Below, one piece after another: positions 26,935 through 63,667 of a stretch of 64,000 bases of DNA (the first letter of the stretch is position 1; each line of letters starts with the position of its first letter). Under the pieces are notes generated by a model. That model did not search any database. It was given only the letters and a program-made list of their open reading frames with translations, and was not told the origin of the DNA. The stretch is taken from positions 1,378,851 through 1,442,850 of the forward strand of contig NW_003314274.1 in the NCBI RefSeq assembly GCF_000143415.4, in the 5' to 3' direction. This stretch comes from Selaginella moellendorffii (taxonomy: Eukaryota > Plantae > Lycopodiophyta). The position numbers and the translations under genes are program-made.

Positions 26935-28461
26935 TTACTGAAAACAAGAGCCAAAAAGCTCTTTGATGTCCACCTTCCACTCCCAATCGTCGTCCTCGAC
27001 ACAGAAACCAACCTAAGAAAAGGCAAATGAAGAACAAAGCAAAACAAAGCATGTTAACAAAACCTCTGGCATTTCCCGGGCAACTGCTGGGGCTGTGGGA
27101 GGAATCAAACCGCGAAGTTGAAGGCGCCTCCATGCACGTAGTTTAAAAACATCCTGCAAGGTAGAACAAAAAACACTAATACAAAGACAAACGCAAACAA
27201 AATTATTACCATGGGTGTGGATGAAGAAGCTCCATGAGCATGAGCAGCAGCAGGAGGAGGCGATAGCACTGGCTCAGCTGGGAGGAGAGCAGCAGCCGGA
27301 GGAGGCGATAGCACTGGCTCAGCTGGGAGGAGAGCAGCAGCCGGAGGAGGCACTAGCACTGGCTCAGCTGGGAGGACAGGAGCTAGATCAGCCGGGAGAG
27401 GAGGCTGTAGTGCTGCCGGATCTGCATCAGTCTCTGGAGCGTGTGGAGCAGCCTCTGGGGTATGTGGAGCTGGATCGGCATCATCAAGTGGAACAGCTTC
27501 GCCCTTTAGAAACCTTGGTCGTTTCCTCTTTTGCTCGTCGCATTCCAACTCTGGTGGCACAGGAGCGGCAGGCTCGATCTCTGGAGGTGGCACTGGAGCG
27601 GCAGGAGGAGGCGCTGGCAGCACTAGAGCGACAAGATCCTGTAGAGGCGTAACTGATCAGAAGCTCTGTGCGAAGGATTTCTTACATTAAGGCGCTCCTC
27701 CTCGTCATCGCATTCCATCACTGGTGGCACTGGAGCGGCAGGAGGAGGCGCTGGCAGCACTAGAGCGACAAGATCCTGTAGAAGCGTAACTGATCAGAAG
27801 CTCTGTGAGAAGGATTTCTTACATTAAGGCGCTCCTCCTCGTCATCGCATTCCATCACTGGTGGCACTGGAGCGGCAGGAGGAGGCGCTGGCAGCACTAG
27901 AGCGACAAGATCCTGTAGAAGCGTAACTGATCAGAAGCTCTGTGAGAAGGATTTCTTACATTAAGGCACTCCTCCTCGTCATCGCATTCCATCACTGGTG
28001 GCACTGGAGCGGCAGGGTCCAGTGGCGCTGGCAGGGCTAGAGCGGCAGGGTCCTGTAGAGGAGTAAACTGATCATGAGCTCCGTGAGAAGGATTCTTACC
28101 TTAAAGCGCTCCTTGTCCTCGCATTCCGTCTCTGGTAGCGCTGGAGTGGCAGGGTTCATCTCTGGAAGTGGCGCTGGTAGCGCGAGAGCGGCAAGGTCCT
28201 GTACAGGCGTGAATTGAAGGAGCTCCGCAAGAAGGATTCTTACCCTAAAGCGCTCCTCGCATTTCATCTCTGGTAGCGCTGGAGCGGCAGATTCCATCCC
28301 TGGTCGCGGCGCTGGCGGAGCTGGAGCCATCCTTGGCAGCGGCGCTGGCGGCGCTGGAGCGGCACGATCCTGTAGACGCGAGACTGATCAGGAGCTGCGC
28401 GAGAAAGATTTCTTACCGTAAGGCGCTCGCCGTCGCCGTCGCCGTCGCCCCCCATCCCCAT
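26935..28461 (-). CDS. Uncharacterised Pro/Ala-rich protein built from tandemly duplicated exon-intron modules
   Basis: Six homologous GTAAG..TACAG phase-0 introns (28370-28416, 28199-28243, 28053-28099, 27913-27959, 27776-27822, 27639-27685) join into one open frame. Later exons end ..WEWKVDIKELFGSCFQ-TAA at 26935. Confidence 0.7.
27591..28014. repeat. 137 bp tandem repeat (90 bp exon + 47 bp intron), three near-identical units
   Basis: cactggagcggcagg recurs at 27591, 27728, 27865 and 28002. Confidence 0.92.
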
Positions 28462-28643
28462 TTCTAGGGTTCTTCGTTACAACGGCTAGTTTTAAGATTT
28501 TGGGGAGCTTCTACAACACGCTTCCCCTGTTAGAAAACATCCCCCGTAATTAAGCAAAATGAGAAAGCTATATTACATATAAACGCAAAGAAACTACGCC
28601 ATCGTCTCCATCTCCTGGCTCCTCTTCTGCGAAGCCCACTTCC

Positions 28644-29925
28644 ATGGCGTTGCCTTCTTGGATCGAGATGGATTCCAGCTTCGCCGCCGTCCCGGCCTTG
28701 GCGTTCTCTCCAATCTCTGGGGTCTTGCAACAGAGGAGCGTCAGAACAAGCTCATTAAACAGTGCGTTCTCTCTTCTTTCTTACAATAAAGGTTTCAACA
28801 CCATTAGAAAAGAAGAAGATAGCTACTTTGAACATCCTCGCTGCAATATCCCCACCATTGCACCAAAACAAAAGGGAAAGAAACAGAAAATGAATGCAGA
28901 CAGGAGGTCTTTAGGAAGAGGATCCTACGTAGCAGCATTGAGGCTCTTGCTCAGGCGGACACAAAGCCAATGCCTTTGCTCTTGTTTGCCCTCACACAAG
29001 AGAATGGCCTATATGTCCCTGTAAAGAAAGCATCATCCACGGGATGGAAAACTTCGGCAAATCGAGTATACATTAACGTCGTCACTTGGTGCTTGCAAGG
29101 AGAAATGAGGCCCGCCCTTGAGGTCGGAATACAAAGCGTTCGCGGCCTTTTGATGTCAAAAAAACGAACGGGGACCACTTACGAGAAGTTTGCTGCTCCA
29201 CTTCCTGTGCTTCGTTGTAAATTTCTCGGCTTGTGCGTGAGGCAATGGCAATGCATTGGACAGACCAGATGCATTTCTGTTCCACGAAGGAAAGAAAGAA
29301 AATAAAGCAAAAAACAGAAGACTTAGTACCAGATGACCCATACATCTGGACTGAATGGAGTGATGCGCATTCACCATGAATACTTGGAGAGAATAGATAC
29401 TATCACTGTTTTAGGCTTGTTAATATCTGGAGAACATAGATTTCAGAAAAAAGAGTGTACCAGTGAACCAGATTTTTACAGAAGTCGTTGGAAGCATTGC
29501 GCTCATGTTCCCGTTTGAAGAAGCTCTAAATTGGACTTCGACTTCGGTTCTCTGCAAAGAAAAAGACCATCAGAATCGTTGAAATCCATTGGTATACAAG
29601 CAAGGAAACCTCGGCCTTTTCACAAGATGGGGTATGTACTGAGCACGAGGAATCGTTTCACAGCCCAAAAGATTATGTCGCTGCAAGCCTCTAATGTCTC
29701 TCGATATCATTGACCAGTTCCAAAGGTTGGAGGAAGAATGTAAGAACACTCTCAATCTCAATAGAAATCCGGATCCAGATGGGAGCCGCAGTGAAAGATT
29801 TGGAAGATCAGGCTGAGCGAACTCCATGTGGTATACTTCAAGAAGAAGAAAAATACTCAGCTCTCTATGGAGCCAGAGAGCTGGATAATCCCACCACCAT
29901 GTTCATATGGTCTCCCAGTTTATAG
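28644..29925 (+). pseudogene. Degenerate coding-like sequence of unknown family upstream of the F-box gene
   Basis: Chain of short overlapping ORFs in different frames, repeated with different lesions in the right arm. No family recognised. Confidence 0.3.
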
Positions 29926-29994
29926 ATCACCCTAATCTCCAAAGTCTATAATATTGTAGCAACCAGGCAAAACAAATATCTTTGAAAACTTTAA
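29499..29994 (+). repeat. Inner inverted repeat, left part (partner 31606-32166)
   Basis: ctcatgttcc..ctctaaattggacttcgact..gaaatccattggta..ccagatgggagc..aaagatttggaagatca..tttgaaaactttaa is found inverted downstream of the F-box gene. Confidence 0.85.
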
Positions 29995-30056
29995 CTTCAT
30001 ACCTTTTGTTAGTTTGCATTAAAGCGGCTTAACCCTTAGGGGAAAAGAAAAGGGTT

Positions 30057-31046
30057 ATGGCATCGCGCAAGAGGGCGTGGGCAGGGATGTCCGGCCTTAT
30101 GCCGGAGCTAGTCAGGGAGATCCTTCGCAGGCTCCCTTTCTCAGGTGTTCTAAGGGCAAGATGTGTGTGCCAGGTGTGGAGATCTGTGGTGGATGCACCC
30201 AGCTTCCGGAGCTCGTACAGGGACAGTGCCAAACTCTTCCTAGATAGCAATTCGATCCAGGACAGCAGCGGCGTGATGATGCGATGGGCGCCGCAGCACT
30301 TTGAAAACGTGGAGAGGGATGTCCCCGACTGGCTGTGCGCAGTGTCGCAGGACAAGCGCCTCGTCCTGGCGCGCTCCTCGCAGGAAAGGAGGCTCTTTGT
30401 CGGGAGTCCCTTCGTGGCCAAGTGGGAGGAGATCCCCTACCTGCGATTTGGGGACATGTCCAGGGTCTGCCTCTTTGCTGCCGCTTCGAATTCTCCTCCC
30501 GGGGATTACAAGGTTGTGGTGTGGTTCTCGGATGGCACGCTCTACACCTTCGTTCGCGGCCAGGTGGCGTGGATTCCTGCCAAAGGGGACGTCGCCCCTG
30601 GATCGATCCCGGTGCTGCTAGATGGTGTAGTGTATTGTACTGCTTCGCGCGATCAAAAGTGGCTCCTCCAGTATGACTTGACACGCAACAAGTTTTTCTA
30701 TTCGCATCTCTATGATAAAGTTGGTGATGGTGTCTGCGTTGCTGCATGGGCCAACAAACTCTACGTGCTCGTGCTCAATGCGGTGAAGAAAGGTAGAGTG
30801 GAGGTTTGGGAAGTTCATATTGAAGTAAAAGAAATCTGGACTGAATTTCTGAGTGAGTATGTTGTGGGTTTGGAGGCTGGGGAATTTAGATTTACTGGGC
30901 AAATTGAGAGTGTTCTCAACTTTTCTTGCTCTTGCAAAGGAGGTAAGAAGAGCAAGGTTTGCTTTTCGTATGATGTGAATTCAAAGACTTGGACTAGACA
31001 AGGGTTTACTTGCTCAATAGCTGTGCCAATACAACTTGTTTACTGA
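30057..31046 (+). CDS. F-box protein, copy 1 (intronless, kelch/FBA-like C-terminus)
   Basis: LMPELVREILRRLPFSGVLRARCVCQVWRSVV F-box motif; YKVVV, VLLDGVVYC and LLQYDL propeller-like motifs. Confidence 0.9.
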   Translation: MASRKRAWAGMSGLMPELVREILRRLPFSGVLRARCVCQVWRSVVDAPSFRSSYRDSAKLFLDSNSIQDSSGVMMRWAPQHFENVERDVPDWLCAVSQDKRLVLARSSQERRLFVGSPFVAKWEEIPYLRFGDMSRVCLFAAASNSPPGDYKVVVWFSDGTLYTFVRGQVAWIPAKGDVAPGSIPVLLDGVVYCTASRDQKWLLQYDLTRNKFFYSHLYDKVGDGVCVAAWANKLYVLVLNAVKKGRVEVWEVHIEVKEIWTEFLSEYVVGLEAGEFRFTGQIESVLNFSCSCKGGKKSKVCFSYDVNSKTWTRQGFTCSIAVPIQLVY

Positions 31047-31605
31047 GCTTTTTAAATTTATATAAACGGTCTATGAGATGAAATGAACTAAAATTTTAAT
31101 GGAAAGGAATATTTTCATTTAAACTGATAATCCAATCCTCCCTGATAACCTCTTAGGTTATACAAATTGAATGTCCAAACTGCAAACGCTCTTGCTAGGT
31201 AAATGTCAATCCTCATGGGTCTTTTTGTGATGGGATTGTACTTGTGTGGGGCTAGTAGAGTGTCTTTCCACAGAAGTACATGACTGTCTTTGATTTATAC
31301 CACATGCAACAAAATCAAGCAGTGTAATTCCTTATAATTGTATCAACAATTGCTGGGCTAAAAAAGGAGATGGATCTGTTCATCCAGGTTAGAGCTGATT
31401 GAGTTATGGCTTACATGAGAGTAGTGATACTTAACATTTTATATAAAACCTTTGTTACAAATGAATTAAGAAAAAGTTCAAGATGAAGGAATCTCCTAAA
31501 ATATGTTTGGATATTTTAGCTATAGTGGATAAGTAATTTCCTGTGTTTTTAGGGCTAGCACCAGGTTACAAATATCCGTATGCTATAGCCCTATTATTTT
31601 CTTCA

Positions 31606-32166
31606 TTAAAGTTTTCAAAGATATTCTAAACTACCATAAAGTTTTTTGTATGATCGCTATAGACATATTATAGACTTTATTCAGAGTGACCTATAAACTG
31701 GGAGTGGGAGTGGGCAAACCATATGAACATTGTGGTGGGAGTATTCATAGACTTTAGTTTCAAGCACCCTAGACGAAAAAGAGGAAGATTAATTAGCACA
31801 ACTGCATTGCTATGTTTTTCTTCTTCTCAAAGTATATCATATTGAGTTTGCTCGGCTTGATCTTCCAAATCTTTCATTGCAGCTCCCATCTGGATTCACA
31901 TTTCTATCGAGATTGAGAGTTTTCTTACATTGTTACTCCTATTAGAGCCTTGCATTGACTCAATATTTTTGGCTGTCAAATGATTCCTTGTGCTCAATAT
32001 ATACTCCATCTTGTCTAATTGTAAGGTACTGAGATATCCTCATATGAAAATGCTAAGGTTTCCTTGCTTGTTTACCAATGGATTTCAAGAAATTGCCTTT
32101 GTAGAGAACCAAAGTCGAAGTCCAATTTAGAGTTTCTTTAAGGTGCACAAATAGGAACATGAGTGC
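31606..32166 (-). repeat. Inner inverted repeat, right part (more AT-shifted)
   Basis: Reverse complement of 29499-29994 with many transitions and indels. Confidence 0.85.
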
Positions 32167-34359
32167 AAACAACTTTGGCCATTAAATAAGGGGATAAAGC
32201 CAAACTCCCGAATGTATGTTATTAAGGGATTAATGTTTAATATATGAAGAAGTTAATGTAAGACAAAGATAAGAGTGCAAAAAATCCTTGAGGTCACGAG
32301 TTGAAGAGTTGAGCTCACAAGTTTAGCAATTTACAAACACTATAAATTTAGAAAATTAAGGTTTATGGCAAAAAAAATTATATTATATTTTTCTAACTCT
32401 TTGTACTTTATATAAATAAAAATGTTTTAGAAGACACTTCATATTCAAGAGTTTAAATATTTACTACATGCCATAATAGATAGGTTTGTCAAAACATAAA
32501 ATAAGATAAGATTTGTTTGTAAAAATATTAAAATTATGACTTCTTTAAAATCATTACTATATTTTTTGGTCAGAATTTAAAATTATTAAATTTTAACTCA
32601 GATTCTTTTGTAAGGTCATGTAATTGTTTAAAAGGTAAAAGCAACCATTGAATAAATTTGTTGCATATAAAAGATAGGTATCATTCTTCTATAGAATATA
32701 TTTTTGAGGGGTTTACTTGTTTAGAATTTATGGATATTTAATCACACTTTTATTCAAAGAGAGGAAACTACACATAAATATATATAATTTTTAATGTTGG
32801 TAAGTTTCAACTCTTGCAATTTTTTTTCTTATGGTAGTAATTCAAGGGCTAGGGGTTGCAATAACTATCTCATTGCATATCACAATCAAGCCACACAAGA
32901 GAAAAAAAAGATGATAGTGAGGGTAGTGATAATAAATTATAAAATAATACAATAACAAAAGGTACAATAAATTAGGTGGAGAAGAATGCCCTTTTACTTG
33001 TTTTAAAAATTTATAATTCTATGACTTTAAAGAAATGTCATATTTATTTTTTGGCTTTTAGTGGAATCAATGGCAGTTAACAATATATATATTCTATAGC
33101 ATCACACTCTTAAAACATTATAATAAAATATTTTTAAGATGGTAAAGATAGAAATGGAGACACACAAATATTACAGGTAGTATTGTGATTACAAATATAT
33201 AAAGTGAAAAATATTTTTATTTCTTAATTATATAAATTATAAAAAGTTTATTTTAGTCTTGATAAATTTAGTTGACTCCTAAAGTCTTCTCTATAATAAA
33301 GTTTATTTGGTATATATGAATATCCACTTTAAGATTTGGTGTAAAATGATGATGAAAATATAATGCATGTGCATAAGAAGTATATTATAAACAACTAAAG
33401 AAAACAACTTGAAAAATGATTCATAGGGTTTAAATATAGAGGGAAAGGGCCCATGAACAAGAGTACACCCCCTTTTTCAGGGTCTTGGGATATTTAAGGT
33501 TAAGTGTTTTTGAGTTTGAATAGTACTAAGTTGGATGACCCTCTAAAAAGTCTAAATAGTAGTAAGCTAGATGACTTTCTGGGAAGTCTAAATTCAAGAG
33601 CTTACATTTGGTATTAGAGGGGTCTTGGGTCCAACTCTGTTGGTTGACTTAGGGGAATCGCACCACATATTAATTGATATTTGGTAAGTCTTGATTGACA
33701 TTTGGTAAATACAATTTGCTTTAGCTAGGTGTAAGTGACTAATTTTTCCATTCTACTTTAGTCACTTAACCACACCTCCAACCACTTGGAGGAGTCTCAC
33801 TCACAACCTCTATAAGTCCTATTCCGAACTTGGGCATGCTAGCCCCGAGAATGGCATCCGCACCACTCAACTTTTGTACTTGGCCCAAGTGTTCCACATG
33901 TTCGATCCCATAACCGACACTCTAAGGTACTATCGACATATTAGCCCATTACGCTAAGGTTATGCCCCTTTTACCTTGGTCACACCGGTGGTCTAACACC
34001 ACCTACATCACAGTCTTGTCTCTCAAAGACTCGGGCTCAGACTCGGACTTGGACTCGGTCTTGGGCTCGGTCTCGGTCTCGGCCTCAGCCTCAGTCCTGG
34101 TCTTGGTCCTGGTCCCAGTCGACTTCGGACTCCATCTCGGGTCCTTCTCAGACTCCATCTCAGATTCCATCTCAGACTCCATCTCAGACTCCATTTCGGG
34201 TCCATCTCAGACTTCTCAAGTGGGAGCTTTTAGTCCAAACGTGTTATGCTCGTTTGGCTTTCACTTCAGCCATTACCACATGGCACCCTTTCGGCTCCAC
34301 TTTGGGGCTTAGGGATTTTTGTCTCACAACTCCACCACCCATAAATGAAGTTCAATGTC

Positions 34360-35034
34360 TATAGCGCACCTTATCTCTATTCCCTTAAGCCAATTGGAAA
34401 GGGGCAATTGCTTTATGAGAGAGCCCTTAGTGGCTATTTTTATCCCCATTTATCCCCCAAGGTTTCAAGGATCCACAGTGATAGTATATCCAAATCTTAT
34501 CCCATGATCACATGCGCTACACTCACCCCCCCTTCAAAGATGTTAATGTCCTCATTGACTATTGACTAACAACCCTTACTAAGCCAAGGGGAATCAGCAC
34601 TTCCATTTCCGCACTGAATCTATCAATCCTTCTATTGTGTAGATCAGCTATTCCACGTGAGGCAACTAGTCATCCACCCGTATTGCTATTCCACGGTGGA
34701 TACCTTCGTCCGTGGATACTCCACACAAGAGGAAGGACGTACATATGGATGCCCAATATGTACGATTTCAAATTTAGGGGTAGGAATATACCTTGCTCAA
34801 GGGTATATTATATTTTTAAGTAGCCACTAATAAATGGGAATCGAACCCGTGCCATTTGCTTCGATACCAACTGTAGCACACCTTATCTCTCTCCCCTTAA
34901 ACTAATTGGAAAAGGGGTAATTGCTTGATAAGAGAGCCCTTAGTGGCTATTTTTATCCCTATTTATCCCCCAAGGTTCTAAGGATCCATGGTGATAGTAT
35001 ATCTAAATCTTATCCCATGATCACATACGCTACA
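34360..35034 (-). mobile_element. TRIM family B, copy 1
   Basis: ~162 bp LTRs (34360-34521, 34872-35034), PBS TGGTATCGAAGC, PPT GGGGGGTGAG, perfect TSD ATGTC. Confidence 0.92.
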
Positions 35035-37651
35035 ATGTCCTCATAGAACGATAAACCATTTTATAAAGTAACACCAACATATATTACATTTTCCATCCTT
35101 GGCACCTAACCCATATTTGTCAATGGTTTGACACTAAAGGCTTGCCATGCCCTATCCAAACTCTAAGGAGCATAGTGTTTCCAACATAGAGACTCATCTG
35201 ACCACCTCAGGTGGTTCTCTCCCTTTTATTGGTTTAGCTTTCGCTAAACCTATTAGAGACACTTTCTCTAGCTCAATCCCACTACTCATTCTCGAATAGT
35301 CTCAACTTCTATTGATATAACTAGTTCACCTTGGAACTTTTAATTTTCACTTCTCGAAGTCAATTTCCTTGGTGTCTCTAACACCTTTCATTACACATAT
35401 TGTGCAACTTCACTTCCTCATCTTAGAAAGTTCTCCACTTGAGGGCACCATCATCCTCCTTTCTATTTTATGCCACCTTTGGCACTAAATTCTAGCTATT
35501 GTAAGTTGTGCTAAAGATGTCTACAACTCTATCATTTGGCTACTTTGCTGCTCCCTCCCTTGAAGCTTTCACCTTTGCCAACTTGGAGCATTTGGGAATC
35601 CATCCTTGGAAGCACACTTCCTTTCTCACAATCCATTAGTATTCAACACATTACTGTTCCATGCCTAACTTTGCCATTTGGATTCCTTTCAATGAACTCC
35701 ATGGCCCACACTTGGCCAGTAGTTTTTTGCTTTTATTCGTTGATTATTACATTGAGCAACATAGGATCCTTACCTCCATTTTTGAGGTATCCTTTTGGTT
35801 CCATAGCAAAGGCTCTACTTTGCTAAGTCCAAAGGGTGCTCACCCCTAGTAGATCTCTTTCGCATTTTCTGCTACAAGCTTTGTCCATGGCCCAACTTTG
35901 CGACCCTCCTATGGGTCTCTCCCAAAGACTACTTCCTTGGACTTACTACACCATCGTATTGGCACAACTAATTTCCCTTTTGGTGTCTTTTCCGCTTGGT
36001 CACCTTGACCAAGTCACACCATTATTAATAGTTCAAATCAACACTTTGAACTAGGAATCATATTCTTTAACCCAAACAAAGACATTGTCCTTGTTTAGCC
36101 ACAAGATCACTTAGTGATCTCATCTTGACCCCTTAACAGATCTACCAATAGGAACTAAGTCTTCCAGACCCTTTTAAATTGTTGACTATGACCCTGGGGG
36201 CATCCCCCACACTTGGCAGTGCGCCCAAACCAGCCCTTCCGGCCAAGGACCCATAGCAACTGAGACTGGGTGTCCCCATCTCATTCACCACGTCCTTGGT
36301 GCCCTTTGCACCAAAGTATTCAAGTTAGATATGTCGAGCTTTTACTCTAAGTAATCTAACTGTGCATCACGACTCCGGGGCATCCCCTGCTTGGCGGTGT
36401 GCCTAAGCTAGTCTCTTCACTAAAAGTCCATGACCACCGAAATATAAATGTCCTTATATTCCAAACCATCACCATGCCCTAGTGATTTTGGACTCGAACC
36501 CAAGCACCAGAAGGTTGGGACTTGAACCCAACCTCTGTATATGCATCTACGGACGGTATCACCCTAGATGCTTAGTGTGACTCCCCACGCCGGTGCACCA
36601 ATTTATATCCAAAGTGCAATACGGATCATAGCTTAGGAACCTAGTCCCTCCAAATTGCCAAGTCGTTTCACTTGACAAGTCTATGATCATGCATAAACTC
36701 TTCCATGCTTGGCTCTATAGGCCACCCCTTTTGAAGTTAACACCTTCAACTAGGGTATTTGTTCCCTCGACTTGCCAACCTTGCTTAGCAAGTCATTCGG
36801 CCACCATAACATGGTTTCATGCATAAGCGTGAAAGTCCTTAACCAACGACTTTCGTTCAAAGCCCTTTCTTTGAACACTCGGGAACTACTTCCTTAACCT
36901 TGATAGCCTTGCCTCGTGGCACGCTTCAAAACCACGCTTCTGTTGCGCCACTCTGATTTCGCACGCTCTATGAACCATTTACACTTGGCTTTCTAGGTAC
37001 TAAGCTACTTAGATTTATCTTTGGGAACCTTGAAGGAACTCTATCCCTTGAAGGAACTCTATTATGGGCCATCCATCCATAAGTGATCATCCCAGATCCA
37101 CTCCTTAACATCCTTAGGATGCCCGCATGCATGGGGAATAACCTTCCCGAATATCCCTTTTCCGGTTATCACCAAACCTTTTTTGTCCATGGCTATGTTC
37201 GCTATCACTGCCACTAGATCTAGGCCCACAGGCCCGATTACTAAGTCCCACGGTCCTCTAGGACTTCTTCCTCCCACGACCGTATCCTTGGTCTCTACAT
37301 CAGAGGACTGCTCCTCTTCCTTTTCACAGTTTGGAACTTTGGGATAACATTTCGGAACATCGTGGCCTTCCTCAAGCCTCGTGGGTACTTTCCCCACCTT
37401 CCGCCTTTGGTGCTCTAGCCATGGGCTTAGAGCGAGGTTTTGTTGAGCCACACCAGGTATCCAAGTAGGTAGTGCCATCCACACTTGGACTAGGAGCATT
37501 GACCATTCGATCTCCCGGGGGGACTAGAGCCGGCTCTTGAATACTTTACCAGGCTACCCCACTTGTTGGTTTGTATTCACTCTAGCCTTGGACTTCCCAA
37601 TGGTTATCCCATCACCCAACATCTGGGTACAGCCTTCCTGGGCCAAACTGG

Positions 37652-38458: not shown

Positions 38459-38899
38459 ACTGGCTCCACTAGAGTCCTCCCCCTACTATACTTTTGGAGC
38501 TCACCAAACCCCCTAGGGTTTGGGAGACGAACGCTTTGGGCTTTCACCCTCTCAAACTCGAACTTAGACTCGGACTCAGGCTCAAACTCGGACTCGAACT
38601 CGGACTCGGACTCGGACTCGGGCTTGGGCTCAGTCTCGGCCTCAGCCTTGGTCTTGGTCTCGGTCCCGGTGTTAGTCTCGATCTCGACTTCGGACTCCAT
38701 CTCGGGTCCTTCTCAGACTCCATCTCGGATTCCATCTCGGGTCCTTCTTAGACTCCATCTCAGATTCCATCTCGGGTCCATCTTGGACTCCATCTTGGGT
38801 CCATCTCGGACTCCATCTCGATCCATCTCAAACTCCATGTCAGACTCCATCTCGGTCCATCTCAGACTCCATCTTGAACTCCATTTCAGTCCATCTCGG

Positions 38900-39085
38900 T
38901 GTAAGTAACCAAAGAGAACAACTCAAGAGACGATCCATGGGGTTCAATATAGAGGGAAAGGGCCCATGAATAAGAGTGCACCCCAATTGGTTAAAAGTCT
39001 TGGGATAATTGGAGTTAAGCATCCTTGGGTTTGAATAGTACTAGGCTGGGTGACCTCCCGGGAAGTCCAAACTCAGGAGCTTACA
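38900..39085 (+). mobile_element. Cassandra solo LTR
   Basis: TGTAAG..CTTACA, 186 bp, TSD CTCGG/CTCGA. 39013-39068 AGTTAAGCATCCTTGGGTTTGAATAGTACTAGGCTGGGTGACCTCCCGGGAAGTCC matches the A-box/IE/C-box half of plant 5S rRNA. Confidence 0.9.
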
Positions 39086-50117: not shown

Positions 50118-53104
50118 TGCCAGTGGTGTGTCCGGTGGTGTTGTGTAGTCGTCGTATTCTTTGCGATGTCCGATACTGGTTCGTCGGAGTTAGCTCGCGG
50201 TAATAATTCGTGTCGGATGTAATTCTCTCTCTTGGAGGGTCTAACAACTTGATTCAACTTCACTTGGTCTTTCTTTCTCTTTGTTTCTAAATTCTTCAAA
50301 TCTCTATCTAAACGTCAGATAAGCTGTTGTCGGTCTTCTTCCGACTTGCTGGATGTTCTTTGTGGTTTTGGATACATGCATCCTTCTACTAGTTGTCGGT
50401 GTCAGATTTGTGTTTGCAGTCAATCATGCAGTTCGGGTAGAACTTTGGGAAGACTGTCGGCGGGCCAATTGTTGATAAAGTTGTTGTGAGCTTGTTCTTT
50501 CTTTTCAGTGCAAATATCAACAGTGGTGTGTGTTGGGTTGGGTTGTGTTCAGCCAAGTTGTGTTGGGTCGAGTGTGCTGGTGTAGTATGCAAACTGGTCT
50601 TCCACTTGCTGGTGCCGAGATGGAGTTCGATGAAGAGTTTCGGATATTCGGGTTTGTCTGGAATGATTTCTTCGATAATGTTGTCGAGTTGTTCAAGTCA
50701 GGATTGGGCGATGGCGTGATTGGCAAGAGTTGTTGCAGCGAACGTGTTGATTTTGAACCAAGTTCGGACTGTTGTTTCGGTGCTGAGCTGCTGACTTTGT
50801 TGGAGGGGTTGTTGAAAAATCGGTGGTGCGTTGTGAAGTTGTCCCTCGACAAGTTGTCCGATACCGGGTAACAAAGTGATGGGTTCGTCGTTGGTGTAGG
50901 TTCTGAGGATGTGCTTCAATATTGGGACTGGGTGCAGGAACTGGAATCGTGTCAGAGCACTAGGATTGCCGGGTCGACAACTGCATGGAAGATGGGTTCG
51001 TTTCGGCAGTGGTGTCGGTTTGTGTCGAGCGCGCTGGTTGAGGTCTCGAGCTTGGAGTGGGTGGTCTTGTGCTCGAAGATGGAGTTTGCCAATGAAGCTG
51101 TTGAGGGCGTCTGCTGATGAAGGTGCTGGTAGATTGGAGTTTCTTGTCAAAGAGGGTTGTTGGTGTTCTTTGTCGGTGATTGGACTTAGAGATCTTGAGA
51201 GAGATCTTTCAGATTCTTCAAAGATCTCCTCTAGAAAGTGTCTGTCTTTACTGCATTGGGCAGCAACCGCTTGGACGCCGTTGATCCATGTTGGCAGTGG
51301 CATTTGCTTGTTGAATTTGGGCGAATGTACGAATTAGAGCGTAATTTGGGCGAATTTGGGTGAGATGGGTAGATTTCTGGATCGTTCTTGCTATCTGCGC
51401 ACAGAGAATGGAGAAAAAATAGAAGAATTTGTAAACCTGAAGGGGAATTCAGAAGCCATGGTCGCCAAATGAAGAGGTGTGAAAACTTCTCTTCGCTGGA
51501 AATCTACTGTTAGTAAGAAAATAAAAGAGAAAAGGGCCCGATCTCCAAGGGCTAAGAAGAAGCATGAGTAAGAGAATGTTGTGTATTGATAAAAAAAATG
51601 ATGGAATGGAGATAGGGATTCACAATTAGGATTCCCCCCTTTGAAAGGCTAGCAGTTCTAACTGCTAGCATATACTATATGTTGTGCATAATTTAATCTA
51701 TGGCTCTGATGCAGCCCTAGGTTCAAGGCTGGAGTCCCTTGAGCCTAGGTTTTTGGTTGATACAGATGGAATCAATTTTTTTCTACAACTTCCACTTTCA
51801 AGATTCACATATCCAAGATTTTATCATAAATAAGATAATGTGATATTAATGTAATATATGAAATATTGCATATATACCTCCTTAGACTAGTAGTAGATTA
51901 TACACTTTGTAGTAAATCCCACAAATTAACTTTGTCTAATTGAGTCTTTTGGTAGTCCAAATTAAGTAGGGGGCTCTTTAAGCATAGTTTTCTAAACATA
52001 TTTCAGAGTTGCAAATGAGTTTTTTGTAATCTCTTCTTACATAACATCTTTGAAATAGTTGATAAAACTACTTTGTATCCCTTTTGGCATTAGATACATG
52101 TATGTACTAACATGCACTATGGTTCTTCTAGCCACTCTATCCCAAGGAAGAAAGTAGTATATTTTAACTTCACAACTGACACGGCATAAAGTAGCATTTC
52201 CATGGAATCAACACTTGAATTTAACAATAATTGTATCATAAGTAGGAAAATTGATTACAAACTTTTTGAAAAACATGAATTTTTGTAAAGATTTCAATTG
52301 TATATTTTATCCATACAATCCAAATGCCTACCACAGTGAACCATAGACATTATACCTTTAAAATGTTAGAAGTGTGTGGTCTTAATCTTGGATTATTTAT
52401 GGATATCTTACTTACTATCCATTTGTTTGGAACCAAAGTTACTAATAAAAGATGGTAATTTGAAGAAGATGTTGCCATTATAGGAGGATAGAACTTTCCT
52501 TTTGGGTTTATATAAAAAAAACTGCACATTGACTAAGAGGTGGGAAAATTAGAAAATGTTATTAATAGTTTTGAATATTACTGAAGATGGAGTTAGTGAA
52601 TTTAGGGTTGATGAATTGGAAGAGGAAGAGAGGATGACAAATAATTCTTGCTTCACATTCATTTTAGCCAAATTGCATTTTTGACACTTTTATTGAAGAT
52701 TAAAAAAACTGAAATTTACTTGGACTTGGAATTCTACAAATTCTATTATTACCTGCCCTCACCCACACAAAAAAACACTCCAAGAATGCAATCATACTAG
52801 TATTGTTGTGAATCACAACCTCCAAAGAAATAGACCAATATAAAACCTTTTAAAAATAAGTTTTAAAAGAATAAAAGTAATGGGTGATTTTAAAAATGTA
52901 GAAGAAACCTCTCTATTATTTTCTTTAGGTTTTGAGTTCTTTATCTCTCTCTTTGTGCTCCTTGTAAAAATTCATAATGAAACATAAATTGAAATTTAAG
53001 GTAAAAATAAGAAGAATGTTAACAACATAAAAAATGAATTTAAATACTACAACATATATAATATATATGTATATGTGACAATTATAATATTATTGTCATG
53101 TATT

Positions 53105-55599: not shown

Positions 55600-58500
55600 G
55601 AGTTTCTCATGTGTCTCTAAAAGATGGTGCTACAATGGTACAATAGTTTAATTGCAACCACTCATGAGGATTGAAGCATTCTCCCAAATATTTCAAGTGT
55701 GCATTTAGATATACCAACGATTGTGATAATGCCTTTGCATTGTCTTTATCAAGGGCCATCTGAGTCAGTGATGCAATTTGATATTTATTTCCAAAGCCTC
55801 TTGCTTTGTGCGAAGCCAAATATGTCTAAGGAGATAAAGTTAGGAATGTTGTGGCTAACATTTGTCAAGATCTTGCAGACCTTGTGCATGCATTTGCTCC
55901 CGCCACCCTTGACAATGCTCTTTATTTGGCATAACATTATGAGATGTCGCCTCTTCCACTTTTTGTTGCATATTTTTTAGCTCTACTTCTTATGGGAAAT
56001 AATTCTATTCCAATGGAAGTTGATGGTACTACTGCTCAAGTTCAAAGACAAGGCCGAGGATGTGGTCGTGGCTATGATGTCTACTATGGGCATGTGATAA
56101 AGTTGGTCACACTTATTAGCATTGTCAACATTTTCCAGATTAATGACTTCCATTATTGGGTGGAGACCTTGGCATCAACAACATTCTATTGGTGTTGCTG
56201 CAATGGAAAGTTTAGACACCAAGATACTTCTAAGAAACAAAAAGTCACGTAAAGAGCAAAGGGACCTTGCACAAATAACTTAGTGACCCTTTCATCTTTC
56301 TTTCAAGAATATCATCAAAGGGTTCACTTGACATTAATTCATCCAGTGTTTACTTTCCAAGCTCATTTTTATAACAAAAGATCTTATATTATTCTCTCCA
56401 TGTTGATTGATATAGGCTCGAGTTTATCGTCTATTACTCAGCCTATTTCCATATGTTACCGTTTACATTTGCATCGTGTGGCATAGTCAGTTTTCATTCT
56501 TTATGGCAACGATTGTACATATGCATATGCATGGACCTAATTGTGAGTGTGGGCGATCTCAAGCTTGAATTGCAGTCATTACGAGTGGTGCTAAGTCAAG
56601 CTTTTGACCTCATCCTTAGTATAGATTGGTTGCGACACAATCATGCCAAGTATAACTTTAAGGCTTCTCCCTTTTGTTTTATACTTTTTTATATTTGTTT
56701 TATTCCTATCATATTTGTTCTTTTTCATCCTTTTGCTTCTACCTCTGCTTCCATCACTTTTGTTTCCTCATTACTTCCTCCTATGTTTCTATTTTGTTTC
56801 TTTCTTCCCTTTTCTAATCCCTTCAACAGTCTTTGTGTTGCAGCGATTGACTACCTCATAAAGGAGTATGCCAATCTTTTTGAATTTGACCTGTCGTCTG
56901 GGGCCAAAATTAAAACATGTCATCCTATTCCAACTAAGGATGCTCACACAATCAAGGTTCCTATTCATCATTGGTCACTAAAAGAGATTAAGATTTCATA
57001 TGCAAACGTCAATGAGATGTTAGAAAATAAAGTCGCGAAATCCTTGGGCATGTGAACTTTATCTTGTGACCAAGTTTGATAGGAGTATTCATTTTTGCAT
57101 TGACTATTGTTTGTTAAACAAAGTGACAATTCTGGATGTATGTATACCCTCTTCATCACACACTACTGATCTCTTGAATTGTCTAGGGAGAAGTTGTTGA
57201 TTCACTAAATTAGATTTTGCTTCTGGTTATTGGCAAGTACCAATGGTCGAAGATGATATTCCTAAGATTGTTTTTCATACATTGCTTGGTTTGTACAAGT
57301 TTCTGGTGATGCTATTTTATTTGAACAATGCTTTAGCAACTTTCCAGCAAATAATGGACAAGATTCTTTGCAATATACTAAAGGTGACTACTAATTTCAT
57401 TGATGATGTTTTAATCCACTTAGAGGGGATGTGGGAGGAATATATCCATGATATTCGTAAAGTGTTGGATGGACTTCAGGATATTAGTTTAAAGTTGAAC
57501 CAGTTGAAATGTGTGTTTAGGTCCAAGGACACAATTTATTTTAGGTATTGTATTTCTTGTGAGGGTTTGCAAGTTGATCTTAACAAATTTGTGGCTATTC
57601 TAAAGTTCCCTACTCCAAAGTGTGTGAATGATGTGCAACACTTTATGGGCAAGGTGTAATATTTCGGTTATTTTGTTAATCATCATTCCGATTACACTGC
57701 ACTGTTGCCAACGTTGCTGAAGTCATTAATGGCATCTTTCATCTAGTCTGCAGATTGTGAGTGGGTGTTTACAAATCTCAAAGAGCTATTGATGACTCCT
57801 CCCTTTTTGGTGTATTCTGACTACACTTGACCTTTCATTTTATGTATGGATGCTTTTGACATTGCTCTTAGACGTGTGTTGTTGCAAGAGAGGCTGAGTA
57901 TGCTTGGTTAGTGCCATCCCATTACATATATCAGTTGTACGTCATAACCAATAGAGGTGAACTACTCCACGATAGAGAAAAAGTGTTTAGAGCAGTTTGG
58001 GGTTTCAAGAAACTTCATACATATCTACATAGTTTTTGGACATTACTAAAAGGTGATCATACTATAGTTACTTTATTATTGAAGCGGAAAAACTTGATTA
58101 GTCTTGGGCATTGAAACTTTAAATATATAATTTTGATGTTGTTCATCGCTTGGGGAGTTTTATAATTAATGTTGATACCCTTTCTCAAGCTCATTTTCCT
58201 TCTTTGCTCTCTTCTCATGTTTCTGACGAGCTTGTTATTCTTGCATTTATGGATTTTTTTAGACAAGGATTCTATGTCATTGGCAGTTGTTATACTTGAT
58301 GTTTAGTGTTCACAAAATACAGATGCAAAGCAAGATTTACCTTCTTTTGATGAGATTTATGAGGCTCAAAAGATTGAGCCATGGATTCAAATGCATTATG
58401 ATGGGTTTGAGAATCTTGGATCACTTGTTGATAACTTGCTATTTCGACATTTATATTCTAAATTATGGTCGACTACTAGCAATGAGTATGTCAATATTGC

Positions 58501-58979
58501 TTTTGACTACTTATATTGTTGGGTGGAAGTTGGTGCTCTTGCTAATACATCTGCCATTACTGTTAATTACTTCTTCCTCAATTGAATAGTGTTTTAGCAT
58601 TCCTGCCTAAAGCAAATTCTTTCGGATAATAGTCTTGCATTTATGGTTGAAGCATTTCATGTTTTAACGTCTTGTTTGAGGATATGCCACACTTTCACAA
58701 ATGTTTATCATCCATAGTTAAACAATCTGATGGAATGGCTCATTTAGACCTTCAAAGGGATGATTGTGAAATACATGAATTATTGCATTTGGATTAGGAT
58801 GCCATCTCTTTAGCATATGTTACAAGAGTGCAAAGTTCTACTAGTGCTTCACTATCTAAACTTCTATATGGTCATGATCTAATACTACCAATAGAGTTGG
58901 GTTTACTATCGTAGTTGCCACAGGATGCTGATACTAGGTCATGGGATCAATATTTGACAAGCATTCTTCCACTTATCCA
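55600..58979 (+). mobile_element. Heavily decayed Ty3/Gypsy internal region, truncated by the right inverted arm
   Basis: LDFASGYWQVPM..LYKFLVM..LNNALATFQQIMD..NFIDDVLI RT, plus protease-, RNase H- and integrase-like relics with many stops. Confidence 0.8.
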
Positions 58980-61900
58980 AGAATTATAAATTTTTAAAAC
59001 AAGTAAAAAGGCATTCTTCTCCACTTAATTTATTGTACCTTTTGTTATTGTATTATTTTATAATTTATTATCACTACCCTCACTATTATCTTTTTTATTT
59101 CTTATGTGGCTTGATTGTGATATGCAATGAGATAGTTATTGCAACCCCTAGCCCTTGAATTACTACCATAAGAAAAAAAATTGCAAGAGTTGAAACTACC
59201 AACATTAAAAATCATATATATTTATGTGTAGTTTCCTCTCTTTGAATAAAAGTGTGATTAAATATCCATAAATTCTAAACAAGTAAACCCCTCAAAAATA
59301 TATTTTATAGAAGAATGATACCTATCTTTTATATGCAACAAATATATTCAATGGTTGCTTTTACCTTTTAAACAATTACATGACTTTTACAAAAGAATCT
59401 TAGTTAAAATTTAATAACTTTAAATTCTGACCAAAAACTATAGTAATGATTTTAAAGAAGTCATAATTTTAATATTTTTACAAACAAATCTTATCTTATT
59501 TTATGTTTTGACAAACCTATCTATTATGGCATGTAGTAAATATTTAAACTCTTGAATATGAAGTGTCTTCTAAAACATTTTTATTTATATAAAGTGCAAA
59601 GAGTTAGAAAAATATAATATAAATTTTTTTGCCATAAACCTTAATTTTCTAAATTTATAGTGTTTGTAAATTGCTGAACTTATGAGCTCAACTCTTCAAC
59701 TCGTGACCTCAAGAATTTTTTGCACTCTTATCTTTGTCTTACATTAACTTCTTCATATATTAAGCATTAATCCTTTAATAGCATACATTCGGGAGTTTGG
59801 CTTTATCCCCTTGTTTAATGGCCAAAGTTGTTTTCACTCATGTTCCTATTTGTGCACCTTAAAGAAACTCTATATTGGACTTCGACTTTGGTTCTCTACA
59901 AAGGCAATTTCTTGAAATCCATTGGTAAACAAGCAAGGAAACCTTAGCATTTTCATATGAGGATATCTCAGTACCTTACAATTAGACAAGATGGAGTATA
60001 TATTGAGCACAAGGAATCATTTGACAACCAAAAATATTGAGTCAATGCAAGGCTCTAATAGGAGTAACAATGTAAGAAAACTCTCAATCTCGATAGAAGT
60101 GTGAATCCAGATGGGAGCTGCAATGAAAGATTTGGAAGATCAAGCCAAGCAAACTCAATATGATATACTTTGAGAAGAAGAAAAACATAGCAATGCAGTT
60201 GTGCTAATTAATCTTCCTCTTTTTCATCTAGGGTGCTTGAAACTAAAGTCTATGAATAATCCCACCACAATGTTCATATGGTTCACCCACTCCCACTCCC
60301 AGTTTATAGATCACTCTGAATAAAGTCTATAATATGTCTATAGCGATCAGACAAAAAACTTTATGGTAGTTTAGAATATCTTTGAAAACTTTAATGAAGA
60401 AAATAATAGGGCTATAGCATATGGATATTTGTAACCTGGTGCTAGCCCTAAAAACACAGGAAATTACTTGTGGAATATCCACTATAGTAGGATTGGTAAT
60501 CCTAATCCGGGAGTGGACGGTGTCCAGTGTTCACCCTAACTCTAAAATATCCAAACATATTTTAGGAGATTCCTTCATCTTGAACTTTTTCTTAATTCAT
60601 TTGTAACAAAGGTTTTATATAAAATGTTAAGTATCACTGAGTGTTTTTCCACTCTCATGTAAGCCATAACTCAATCAGCTCTAACCTGGATGAACAGATC
60701 CATCTCCTTTTTTAGCCCAGCAATTGTTGATACAATTATAAGGAATTACACTGCTTGATTTTGTTGCATGTGGTATAAATCAAAGACAGTCATGTACTTC
60801 TGTGGAAAGACACTCTACTAGCCCCACACAAGTACAATCCCATCGCAAAAAGACCCATGAGGATTGACATTTACCTAGCAAGAGCGTTTGCAGTTTGGAC
60901 ATTCAATTTGTATAACCTAAGAGGTTATCAGGGAGGATTGGATTATCAGTTTAAATGAAAATATTCCTTTTCATTAAAATTTTAGTTCATTTCATCTCAT
61001 AGACCGTTTATATAAATTTAAAAAGCTCAGTAAACAAGTTGTATTGGCACAGCTATTGAGCAAGTAAACCCTTGTCTAGTCCAAGTCTTTGAATTCACAT
61101 CATACGAAAAGCAAACCTTGCTCTTCTTACCTCCTTTGCAAGAGCAAGAAAAGTTGAGAACACTCTCAATTTGCCCAGTAAATCTAAATTCCCCAGCCTC
61201 CAAACCCACAACATACTCACTCAAAAATTCAGTCCAGATTTCTTTTACTTCAATATGAACTTCCCAAACCTCCACTCTACCTTTCTTCTCTGCATTCAGC
61301 ACGAGCACGTAGAGTTTGTTGGCCCATGCAGCAACGCAGACACCATCACCAACTTTATCATACAGATGCGAATAGAAAAACTCGTTGCGTGTCAAGTCAT
61401 ACTGGAGGAGCCACTTTTGATCGCGCGAAGCAGTACAATACACTACACCATCTAGCAGCACCGGGATCGATCCAGGGGCGACGTCCCCTTTGGCAGGAAT
61501 CCACGCCACCTGGCCGCGAACGAAGGTGTAGAGCGTGCCATCCGAGAACCACACCACAACCTTGTAATCCCCGGGAGGAGAATTCGAAGCGGCAGCAAAG
61601 AGGCAGACCCTGGACATGTCCCCAAATCGCAGGTAGGGGATCTCCTCCCACTTGGCCACGAAGGGACTCCCGACGAAGAGCCTCCTCTCCTGCGAGGAGC
61701 GCGCCAGGACGAGGCGCTTGTCCTGGGACACTGCGCACAGCCAGTCGGGGTCGGGGACATCCCTCTCCACGTTTTCAAAGTGCTGCGGCGCCCATCGCAT
61801 CATCACGCCGCTGCTGTCCTGGATCGAATTGCTATCTAGGAAGAGTTTGGCACTGTCCCTGTACGAGCTCCGGAAGCTGGGTGCATCCACCACAGATCTC

Positions 61901-63667
61901 CACACCTGGCACACACATCTTGCCCTTAGAACACCTGAGAAAGGGAGCCTGCGAAGGATCTCCCTGACTAGCTCCGGCATAAGGCCGGACATCCCTGCCC
62001 ACGCCATCTTGCGCGATGCCATAACCACCGGGCCCTAAGGGTTAAGCCAATGGCAGCTTAACTAACAAAAGGTATGAAGTTTAAGTTTTCAAAGATATTT
62101 GTTTTGCCTGGTTGCTACAATATTATAGACTTTGGAGATCAGAGTGATCTATAAACTGGGACTGGGAGTGGGAGTGGGAAGACCATATGAACATTGTGGT
62201 GGGATTATCCAGCTCTCTGGCTCCATAGACTAAGATCAGCCAGCATGACTACATTGCTGTGTTTTTCTTCTTCTTGAAGTATACCACATCCTGATCTTCC
62301 AAATCTTTCACTGCAGCTCCCATCTGGATCCGGATTTCTATTGAGATTGAGAGTTTTCATACATTCTTCCTCCAACCTTTGGAACTTGTCAATGATATCG
62401 AGAGACATTAGAGGCTTGCAGCGACATAATCTTTTGGGCTGTCAAACGATTCCTCGTGCTCAGTACATACTCCATCTTGTCTAACTGTATGAAAAGGCCG
62501 AGGTTTCCTTGCTTGTATACCAATGGATTTCAACGATTCTGATGGTCTTTTTCTTTGCGAAGTCCAATTTAGAGCTTCTTTAAGGTGCACAAACGGGAAC
62601 ATGAGCGCGGTTGCTTCCAACGACTTCTGTAAAAATCTGGTTCACAGGTACACTCTTTTTCTGAAATTTATGTTCTCCAGATATGAACAAGGCTAAAACA
62701 GTGATAGTATCTATTCTCTCCAAGTATTCATGGTGAATGCGCATCACTCCATTCAGTCCAGATCATCTGGTAAGTCTTCTGTTTTTTGCTTTATGTTTCT
62801 GCATTATTTTCTTTCTTTCCTTCGTTGAACGGAAATGCATCTGGTCTGTCCAATGCATTGCCATTGCCTCACGCACAAGCCGAGAAATTTACAACGAACA
62901 CAGGAAGTGGAGCAGCAAACTTCTCGTAAGTGGTCCCCGTTCGTTTTTTTTTTTTTTTTTGACATCAAAAGGCCGCGAACGCGTTGTATTGCGACCTCAA
63001 GGGCGGGCCTCATTTCTCCTTGCAAGCACCAAGTGACGACGTTAATGTATACTCGATTTGCCAAAGTTCTCCATTATTTACAGGGACATATTATATGTGT
63101 GAGAGCAAAAAAGAGCGAAGGCATTGGCTTTGTGTCCGCCTGAGCAAGAGCCTCAATGCTGCTACATAGGATCCTCTTCCTAAAGACCTCCTGTCTGCAT
63201 TCATTTTCTGTTTCTTTCCCTTTTGTTTTGGTGCCATGGTGGGGATATTGCAGCGAGGATGTTCAAAGTAGCTATCTTCTTCTTTTCTAAGGGTGTTGAA
63301 ACCTTTCTTGTAAGAAAGAAGAGAGAACGCACTGTTTAACGATGTTTTGACGCTCCTCTGTTGCAAGACCCCAGAGATTGGAGAGAACGCCAAGGCCGGG
63401 ACGGTGGCGAAGCTGGAATCCATCTCGATCCAAGAGGAAGTGGGCTTCGCAGAAGAGGAGCCAGATGGCGTAGTTTCTATGCGTTTATATTTAATATAGC
63501 CTTCTCATTTTGCTTAATTACGGAGTTTTCTAACAGGGGAAGCGTGTTGTAGAAGCTCCCCAAAATCTTAAAACTAGCCGTTGTAACGAAGAACCCTAGA
63601 AATGGGGATGGGGAAGGTAAGAAATCTTTCTCGCGCAGCTCCTGATCAGTCTCGTCTACAGGATCGT
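58980..63667 (-). repeat. Right arm of the ~4.65 kb inverted duplication
   Basis: Reverse complement of 28365-33020, including its own inner inverted repeat (~59835-60394 and ~62080-62608). Confidence 0.95.
61027..62022 (-). CDS. F-box protein, copy 2
   Basis: Intact ORF differing from copy 1 by R6M, a PD insertion, K>E and V>E. Confidence 0.9.
   Translation of the reverse strand: MASRKMAWAGMSGLMPELVREILRRLPFSGVLRARCVCQVWRSVVDAPSFRSSYRDSAKLFLDSNSIQDSSGVMMRWAPQHFENVERDVPDPDWLCAVSQDKRLVLARSSQERRLFVGSPFVAKWEEIPYLRFGDMSRVCLFAAASNSPPGDYKVVVWFSDGTLYTFVRGQVAWIPAKGDVAPGSIPVLLDGVVYCTASRDQKWLLQYDLTRNEFFYSHLYDKVGDGVCVAAWANKLYVLVLNAEKKGRVEVWEVHIEVKEIWTEFLSEYVVGLEAGEFRFTGQIESVLNFSCSCKGGKKSKVCFSYDVNSKTWTRQGFTCSIAVPIQLVY

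Follow-up and report, generated by a model that had tools for sequence, protein, structure and literature searches.

Two F-box genes lie in opposite orientations in the 64,000-nucleotide stretch of Selaginella moellendorffii DNA analysed here (the window), each on one arm of a long inverted repeat. Proteins encoded in the window matched S. moellendorffii v1 exactly. We asked whether this arrangement represents a genuine gene duplication, a palindrome that is homogenised by gene conversion, the product of a transposon or an artefact of assembly. A repeat search of the window identified five collinear inverted blocks with 97-100% identity between the arms, far beyond chance. Blastn aligned 28450-31519 with 63613-60542 (92.1% with gaps) and 31531-33020 with 60469-58980 (97.6%), and global alignment revealed sharp arm limits at 28364/63667 and 33020/58980, leaving a spacer of 25.96 kb. 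These analyses agreed with the first-pass annotation, which had described inverted, reverse-complement arms at this locus. It had also called the arms near-identical, which overstated their similarity: the alignment contained 106 substitutions (60 transitions and 46 transversions; K2P 0.024 over 4521 aligned bases) and 29 indel events totalling 303 bp, including a 54-bp block specific to the right arm. Divergence was uneven along the arms, with values of 0.040 in the outer part, 0.009 in the core and 0.022 in the inner part. No further inverted homology was detected outside the arms in the window. The geometry would allow inversion of the spacer, as had been proposed; the accompanying term "stem-loop" is only a picture, since nothing suggests hairpin formation with a 26 kb spacer.

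Inside the left arm, module 1 of a Pro-rich gene (exon and intron) is separated from the F-box gene by a divergent intergenic region of 1.6 kb, and approximately 2 kb of AT-rich 3' flank follow the F-box gene (Table 1). The start codon of the Pro-rich gene, read by eye, probably lies within this arm; Pfam detected no domains in the Pro-rich ORFs or in the ORF at 28644-29024. The outer end of the arm corresponds to half of a Pro-rich module, and this module continues only on the left side, where the array is intact. The module is severed at 63667 but whole beside the left arm, which identifies the right arm as derived. Both proposals made previously, that the left arm runs on into the Pro-rich gene and that the right arm is derived and joins unrelated DNA past 63667, were therefore upheld; the right flank (63668-64000) gave zero matches to the rest of the window. 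Alignment of the junctions showed unrelated flanks, with neither terminal repeats shared by the arms nor a target-site duplication at the arm ends.

Table 1 Features of the inverted-repeat locus (positions within the window).
Feature	Position	Strand	Description
Pro-rich modular gene	27105..28473	-	137-bp units of exon and short intron (putative structure); array 27586-28316
Left arm (parental)	28364..33020	+	4657 bp
Older nested inverted repeat, outer member	29497..29994	+	63 bp upstream of F-box ATG; right-arm equivalent 62080-62608
Left F-box gene	30057..31046	+	single exon, 329 aa; old model SELMODRAFT_410700
Older nested inverted repeat, inner member	31606..32168	-	560 bp downstream of F-box stop; right-arm equivalent 59837-60394
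Spacer, left part	33021..41194		dispersed repeats; 12/23/35-bp microsatellite-like arrays at 37765-38899
Ty3/Gypsy LTR retrotransposon	41195..51764	-	10.57 kb; complete, frameshifted
Ty3/Gypsy pol relic	57045..58979	+	degraded, AT-rich; stops at inner edge of right arm, without 3' LTR
Right arm (derived)	58980..63667	-	4688 bp; reverse complement of left arm
Right F-box gene	61027..62022	-	single exon, 331 aa counted from ATG; old partial model SELMODRAFT_410701
Truncated copy of Pro-rich gene module 1	63560..63667	+	outer end of right arm; 30-bp deletion; abuts unrelated DNA

Both F-box ORFs proved to be intact, as claimed by the first-pass annotation, and each encodes an N-terminal Pfam F-box (PF00646; E 7e-8, 32.6 bits against a cut-off of 20.5). 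The right protein has 3 substituted residues relative to the left one and is longer by an in-frame insertion of 2 aa; a 6-bp indel separates the two ORFs at 30322/61756. Pfam gave no match to a C-terminal FBA/Kelch-like propeller, even at E 10. The C-terminal 275 aa were similar to plant FBA_1, FBA_3, KIB1-4 and At3g26010-like beta-propellers (feature score 0.94, TM 0.65-0.70, with a model pLDDT of 0.63), and in these models the left and right proteins resemble an F-box followed by a C-terminal FBA-type beta-propeller. Of the 10 differences between the twin ORFs, on which the selection test rests, 7 are synonymous and 3 are non-synonymous (dS 0.032, dN 0.0039, omega 0.12, Fisher p 0.0018). Both copies have thus been kept by purifying selection, which accounts for the high identity of the arm core. 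Protein searches retrieved only three loci for this tiny family, which a word-based search confined to S. moellendorffii. A frameshifted paralogue was found on another scaffold, where the gene model fuses it to a LEA-like N-terminus.

The arms could also be allelic, with the assembler having placed both haplotype versions of a single locus on one contig and inverted one relative to the other. The S. moellendorffii assembly Selmo1 is Sanger-based and contains a mix of both haplotypes (PMC3095285; PMC5750206). Nearby allelic divergence (17/706 aa in a PPR pair, 2.4% of residues) was of the same order as the divergence of the arms, and a further contig encodes a protein (SELMODRAFT_431392) with exactly the sequence of the right-copy model. 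Judged from the PPR pair, allelic divergence in the region is high, so the divergence of the arms alone does not separate paralogues from alleles. However, positions 18321-64000 are gap-free and contain no N, the sole gap of the window (18221-18320) being outside the locus; homology ends abruptly at both limits of the 4.66 kb segment, not at a contig end, and 26 kb of unique sequence separates the arms. Three distinct versions of the protein were also present in one diploid plant. The left copy carries K212 and V243, the right copy E212 and E243, and SELMODRAFT_420979, encoded together with XP_024542106 on a 1,464,571-bp scaffold that also holds an allele of the PPR gene of the window, carries K212 and E243 with a private N-to-I change, so that this allelic version is identical to neither arm. 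Given a gap-free locus and three versions in a diploid, a haplotype mis-join is an unlikely origin of the arms, to which we assign very little probability. The mosaic K212/E243 allele is also relevant to the proposal that the duplication is older than it appears and that recurrent arm-to-arm conversion homogenises either the arms as a whole or just the gene core. In agreement with this proposal, the core (30053-31422) had diverged three- to fourfold less than the remainder of the arms (12/1370 vs 94/3151 differences, p 5e-6), only 2 differences were found in the 376 bp following the stop codon (31047-31422, p 0.03), and the longest perfect tract between the arms was, at 291 bp, slightly longer than the 95% limit obtained by simulation (261 bp). 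Synonymous divergence within the core was nonetheless as high as that of the non-coding arms (0.022-0.040), so that gene conversion is not needed and protein constraint explains the identity of the core. Low divergence past the stop codon could be due to UTR constraint or to a short conversion tract. The outgroup paralogue SELMODRAFT_443141 also has K212, and the mosaic allele therefore requires no conversion; as far as the sequences go, it fits ancestral retention and also a conversion event. Primate Y-chromosome ampliconic palindromes have arms that are >99.9% identical through ongoing conversion. The Selaginella locus is similar to these palindromes in having inverted arms with an intact gene pair around a unique spacer that the geometry would allow to invert, but its arms differ by approximately 2.4% and by 29 indels, and the silent sites of the genes are as diverged as non-coding DNA. 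Maintenance by conversion, the alternative raised by the first-pass annotation, is not supported by these values and we consider it highly improbable.

Alternatively, the F-box gene could be the cargo of a Pack-MULE-like or foldback-like DNA transposon with long inverted repeats, and the arms or the dispersal of the family could result from transposition. An older nested inverted repeat of approximately 0.5 kb (68% identity with gaps, blocks of around 85%) lies on both sides of the gene in each arm, and the frameshifted paralogue fused to a LEA-like sequence recalls Pack-MULE or foldback gene capture, in which long inverted repeats bracket a gene and a fragmentary paralogue is joined to foreign coding sequence at another locus. 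Unlike such captured genes, the Selaginella locus has no target-site duplication, conserved termini or evidence of multiple copies, and its arms are not bounded by the nested repeats. The arms reach 1.1 kb and 0.85 kb past these repeats and include part of the neighbouring gene; the present duplication was therefore not a transposition of the nested-repeat unit. In addition, no target-site duplication was recognisable at the arm ends or at the ends of the nested repeats, where a decayed one is possible at 32% divergence, there is no transposase nearby, and protein searches returned no more than the three family loci. The idea that the arm itself is a transposon was rejected, since it has neither termini nor a target-site duplication, and its 5' and 3' ends displayed no Helitron-like or TIR-like features by eye. 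A transposon-borne origin is highly improbable. Another reading treats the locus as a structurally active inverted-repeat module, in which the orientation of the spacer may differ between haplotypes, exchange between the arms may explain the mosaic allele, and the nested 0.5 kb repeat would represent an earlier fold-back round. If true, the F-box gene would be a repeatedly "palindromised" unit; we regard this as improbable.

The data presented make it likely that the locus is a genuine inverted segmental duplication, with a parental left arm and a derived right arm that diverge independently, both F-box genes being under selection and no homogenisation being needed. A single event would have copied, in reverse orientation, a 4.66 kb segment that starts inside Pro-rich module 1, spans the intergenic region and the F-box gene and ends in the AT-rich 3' flank. 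The derived copy would have come to lie beside a truncated old Ty3/Gypsy element, at the far end of the spacer from the parental copy. Since then the arms would have evolved independently, accumulating approximately 2-4% divergence at unconstrained sites and many indels. With neither transposon termini nor a target-site duplication found, break repair or template switching during replication is the probable copying mechanism. The outcome would be two genes, predicted to encode SCF substrate receptors and belonging to a family that evolves by birth and death, for which the retention of both by purifying selection would be as expected.

In kind, the locus belongs with common plant gene duplications and is no palindrome that maintains itself. 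It resembles plant F-box genes of the FBA/FBK type that have been duplicated locally or segmentally, in which an N-terminal F-box is combined with a C-terminal F-box-associated beta-propeller (a putative one in the Selaginella proteins) and recent paralogues lie nearby, and also birth-and-death expansion of SCF substrate receptors, with a decayed third copy elsewhere and both young copies under purifying selection. Unlike the usual local F-box duplicates, which are head-to-tail neighbours, the Selaginella copies lie in opposite orientations, separated by 26 kb in TE-rich DNA, and unlike plant F-box expansions the family is tiny and, by the word-based search, restricted to one species. Thousands of local duplicates have been reported in S. 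moellendorffii (PMC5750206). The present locus offers a well-resolved example of gene gain in a lycophyte without whole-genome duplication, in which a short inverted segmental copy would have brought a gene and its entire promoter region into transposon-rich DNA, with both copies under selection.

The spacer had been described as a retroelement nest, a generous term: it contains one complete Gypsy element and one pol relic, with AT-rich DNA and non-coding repeats making up the remaining 13 kb or so. The complete element has 295-bp LTRs with TG..CA ends (41195-41489 and 51470-51764; K2P 0.076) and is flanked by a 5-bp target-site duplication, GATGG (41190-41194 and 51765-51769). Pfam recovered protease, RT and RNase H in this order; the putative integrase is frameshifted, with C-terminal motifs seen only by eye. 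In the relic, RT (57045-57662) and RNase H (57753-58188) were identified by both Pfam and tblastn. The claim that an integrase relic is cut at 58980 was thus borne out as regards a degraded Gypsy relic with RT and RNase H, whereas the integrase itself (58190-58979) was assigned by position and by-eye motifs only; Pfam searches of short stop-to-stop pieces of 58123-59155 gave no integrase match. Sensitive blastn found no LTR for this AT-rich relic within the arm or upstream. The possibility that the right arm had simply been inserted into the AT-rich Gypsy was rejected, as neither 63668-64000 nor 33021-33720 continues or matches the pol frame. In the left part of the spacer, no TE protein domain was detected by Pfam in the ORF at 37604-38272, other ORFs of at least 70 aa being judged by eye. 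A dispersed repeat occurs in direct copies at 33380-33706, 53100-53581 and approximately 39000-39590. Rfam and tRNA scans of the whole window returned no matches.

The LTRs of the complete Gypsy differ at 21/295 positions, confirming the earlier count of about 21 and the observation that the arms are more alike than the enclosed LTRs. The conclusion that the arms are younger was weaker. Although the LTRs are more diverged, their transition to transversion ratio was 19:2, compared with 60:46 in the arms, and 13/19 transitions lie in CpG/CHG contexts. The excess was gone when transversions alone were compared (0.7% in the LTRs vs 1.0% in the arms, p 0.77) and when all changes outside CpG/CHG contexts were compared (p 0.26). 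LTR divergence inflated by CpG/CHG transitions is not directly comparable with that of genic duplicates for ordering events. The 10.6 kb Gypsy of the spacer and the duplication of the arms are roughly of similar age.

A repeat search of the window, blastn and a global alignment each confirmed the long inverted repeat described in the first-pass annotation. The repeat search returned five collinear inverted blocks with 97-100% identity (about 28750-33020 against 58980-63342). Blastn matched 28450-31519 to 63613-60542 at 92.1% with gaps counted and 31531-33020 to 60469-58980 at 97.6%, together with a 54-bp outer piece. In the global alignment the outer ends were sharp at 28364/63667 and the inner ends at 33020/58980; outside them similarity dropped to noise within a few bases, and a spacer of 25,959 bp separates the arms. 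The arms are not near-identical, as they had been called: over 4521 aligned bases they differ by 60 transitions and 46 transversions (K2P 0.024), and their 29 indel events add up to 303 bp. Within the outer 1.7 kb lie 23 of the 29 indels, and a 54-bp block (60487-60540) is specific to the right arm. Neither terminal repeats nor a target-site duplication bounded the arms when their ends were checked in the alignment, so the arms represent a segmental copy, not the product of transposition.

Features of the inverted-repeat locus
Feature	Coordinates	Strand or orientation	Details
Left arm	28364-33020	+	4657 bp
Right arm	58980-63667	-	4688 bp
Left F-box ORF	30057-31046	+	intact, single-exon, 329 aa
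Right F-box ORF	61027-62022	-	intact, single-exon, 331 aa counted from ATG
Nested repeat, left arm	29497-29994 pairs with 32168-31606	inverted	68% with gaps, blocks ~85%
Nested repeat, right arm	62608-62080 pairs with 59837-60394	inverted	~0.5 kb
Pro-rich gene	27105-28473	-	137-bp tandem units at 27586-28316, left of left arm
Complete Gypsy insertion	41195-51764	-	295-bp LTRs, TG..CA ends, GATGG 5-bp target-site duplication on both sides
AT-rich relic, RT	57045-57662	+	Pfam, tblastn
AT-rich relic, RNase H	57753-58188	+	tblastn

At this locus an F-box receptor gene was copied, with its flanks, in a local segmental duplication. Such duplication is the usual growth route of the F-box family in plants; the inverted orientation and transposon-filled spacer found here are less common. 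Both ORFs were intact, as previously claimed, and correspond to the early gene models SELMODRAFT_410700 (left) and SELMODRAFT_410701 (right). Proteins identical to the left ORF and to the PPR ORF at 3387-5507 are encoded on a Selaginella moellendorffii contig of 2,863,689 bp. Pfam detected an F-box domain in both proteins (E 7e-8); with the threshold relaxed to E 10 it still returned no match to the last 275 residues. In the ESM Atlas, the C-terminal part (mid-confidence model, feature score 0.94, TM 0.65-0.70) had plant F-box-associated beta-propellers as neighbours (FBA_1/FBA_3, KIB1-4, At3g26010-like). Given the Pfam domain and this placement, both genes probably encode FBA-type SCF substrate receptors. 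Among 5.8 billion proteins, word-based searches found the family in S. moellendorffii only: the two copies described here, one model on the scaffold of the other haplotype and a frameshifted paralogue, SELMODRAFT_443141 (P0001), on a third scaffold. In the latter model an N-terminus resembling LEA proteins is joined to the F-box gene in frameshifted form, and part of the model follows the F-box gene in an alternative frame; a neighbouring gene model has probably absorbed a pseudogene fragment here.

The duplicated unit runs from the first module of the Pro-rich gene through 1.6 kb of divergent intergenic DNA and the F-box gene into an AT-rich 3' flank of ~2 kb, and the right F-box copy carried its entire upstream region along. 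When the 137-bp Pro-rich units were aligned with the arm ends, the terminal 80-110 bp on the outer side of each arm proved to be the second half of one further unit, the first half of which occurs only on the left (28273-28363). At the right arm, the outer end is a cut 5' fragment of the gene, shortened again by a 30-bp deletion and adjoining DNA (63668-64000) with no match elsewhere in the window. Because the cut unit continues on the left only, the arm ends show that the right copy derives from the left, in agreement with the earlier proposal. Read by eye on the minus strand, each unit would consist of a 90-nt exon and an intron of ~47 nt; the gene appears to be a modular exon-intron array growing by unit duplication. 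Pfam gave no match to the array.

Nested within each arm, a second inverted repeat brackets the F-box gene and is older than the arm duplication. It had no further copies in the window and no recognisable target-site duplication. It may be the remains of the terminal repeats of a gene-carrying transposon, or of an earlier fold-back duplication.

In an alignment of the arms for identity, Ks and conversion tracts, divergence was uneven: K was 0.009 in the core (30053-31422), 0.040 in the outer and 0.022 in the inner region, with 12/1370 differences in the core versus 94/3151 in the rest (p 5e-6). Codon-level comparison of the ORFs, left versus right, gave 10 differences and an in-frame 6-bp indel (Pro-Asp extra on the right). 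The high identity of the core is attributed to protein constraint on both copies, because seven differences were synonymous and three non-synonymous (dS 0.032, dN 0.0039, omega 0.12, Fisher p 0.0018). Silent sites in the gene are as diverged as non-coding arm DNA, so the whole arm fits a single duplication date. Only the first 376 bp downstream of the stop codon, with 2 differences, are slightly too similar (p 0.03), which could reflect chance, constraint on a UTR or a conversion tract of short length. The three longest stretches of perfect identity (291, 252 and 249 bp) all lie within or beside the ORF; the 95% limit, simulated with differences spread uniformly, was 261 bp. From these sequence comparisons we conclude that arm-to-arm conversion, previously offered as one of two explanations for the similarity of the arms, is not maintaining them. 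The locus resembles conversion-maintained palindromes in geometry only and does not pass either of the two tests that define them. Arm recombination could in principle invert the 26 kb spacer, as had been pointed out, but there is no sign here that it did.

The two arms might instead be haplotype alleles mis-joined by the assembler, a reading considered because the Sanger-based Selmo1 assembly (PMC5750206) contains both haplotypes (PMC3095285) and allelic divergence at this locus is high. The PPR alleles (3387-5507, plus strand, against P0003) differ at 17/706 residues; this 2.4% is a large difference for two alleles and points to a haplotype block of strong divergence. Against a mis-join, the sole N run in the window is 18221-18320, so the locus sits in a single gap-free contig; homology breaks off abruptly at either end of a short segment, and 26 kb of unique sequence separates the arms. 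Moreover, one diploid plant yielded three distinct versions of one 112-residue stretch, which requires at least two loci. On these four points a mis-join is unlikely. The left copy has K212/V243, the right E212/E243, and SELMODRAFT_420979, which shares its scaffold of 1,464,571 bp with the PPR allele, K212/E243 and a private Asn-to-Ile change; at positions 212 and 243 the outgroup paralogue carries Lys and Val. Most parsimoniously, on thin evidence, SELMODRAFT_420979 would be an allele of the right copy, in which case the duplication predates the divergence of the haplotypes. SELMODRAFT_431392, encoded on another small contig and identical in protein to the right-copy model, allows the other assignment, which then needs one conversion or parallel change.

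The enclosed Gypsy element encodes protease, RT and RNase H in Gypsy order and a putative, frameshifted integrase, seen by eye as C-terminal motifs. Its LTRs differ at 21/295 positions (K2P 0.076 +/- 0.017), matching the estimate of the first-pass annotation, and at all sites they are significantly more diverged than the arms (p 2e-5). As a timing argument, this comparison is weak. Transitions make up 19 of the 21 LTR differences, against 60 transitions to 46 transversions in the arms, and 13 of the 19 LTR transitions lie in CpG or CHG context, a pattern characteristic of deamination in methylated transposon DNA. With those transitions excluded the LTRs differ by 2.7% versus 1.8% for the arms (p 0.26), and on transversions alone by 0.7% versus 1.0% (p 0.77). 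Because the LTR excess is mostly CpG/CHG transitions and disappears on transversions, the LTR and arm clocks cannot be compared and give no order for insertion and duplication. The Gypsy interior (41489-51470, ~10 kb) is very strongly biased in strand composition, with a plus-strand GC skew of +0.23 to +0.37 and AT skew of -0.18 to -0.33; its CpG o/e is high (0.82) and that of its LTRs poor (0.18-0.24).

The Ty3/Gypsy pol (plus strand) adjoining the inner edge of the right arm is AT-rich, CpG-depleted (o/e 0.26), truncated and much more decayed. It gives a better clue that transposon DNA was already in place where the copy landed, although a later deletion could mimic such a landing. The Gypsy integrase relic reported at 58980 was upheld as Gypsy pol by its RT and RNase H; the 0.8 kb after RNase H is a putative integrase by position and motifs read in translations, which Pfam does not confirm. 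The relic has no 3' LTR, and sequence searches found its remainder neither beyond the right arm nor beside the left arm. The inner junction is therefore not a simple insertion of the arm into this element; it reflects either a complex copying event or a later deletion that trimmed element and arm alike.

Elsewhere in the spacer, a dispersed short repeat family (33380-33706, 38907-39055, 39393-39590 and 53100-53581; 71-79% identity, one orientation throughout) is tandemly doubled at 53053-53549, and 12/23/35-bp microsatellite-like arrays beside it form a local palindrome (37765-38899). A tandem pair of TAXi_C (xylanase-inhibitor/aspartyl-protease-like) ORFs at 9442-10491 and 11026-12069 (plus strand), ~81% identical in DNA, is a second local duplication within the window. 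The ORF at 24189-24737 (minus strand) carries an NYD-SP28_assoc (sperm-tail/dynein regulatory complex) domain (E 5e-7), which fits a plant with flagellated sperm.
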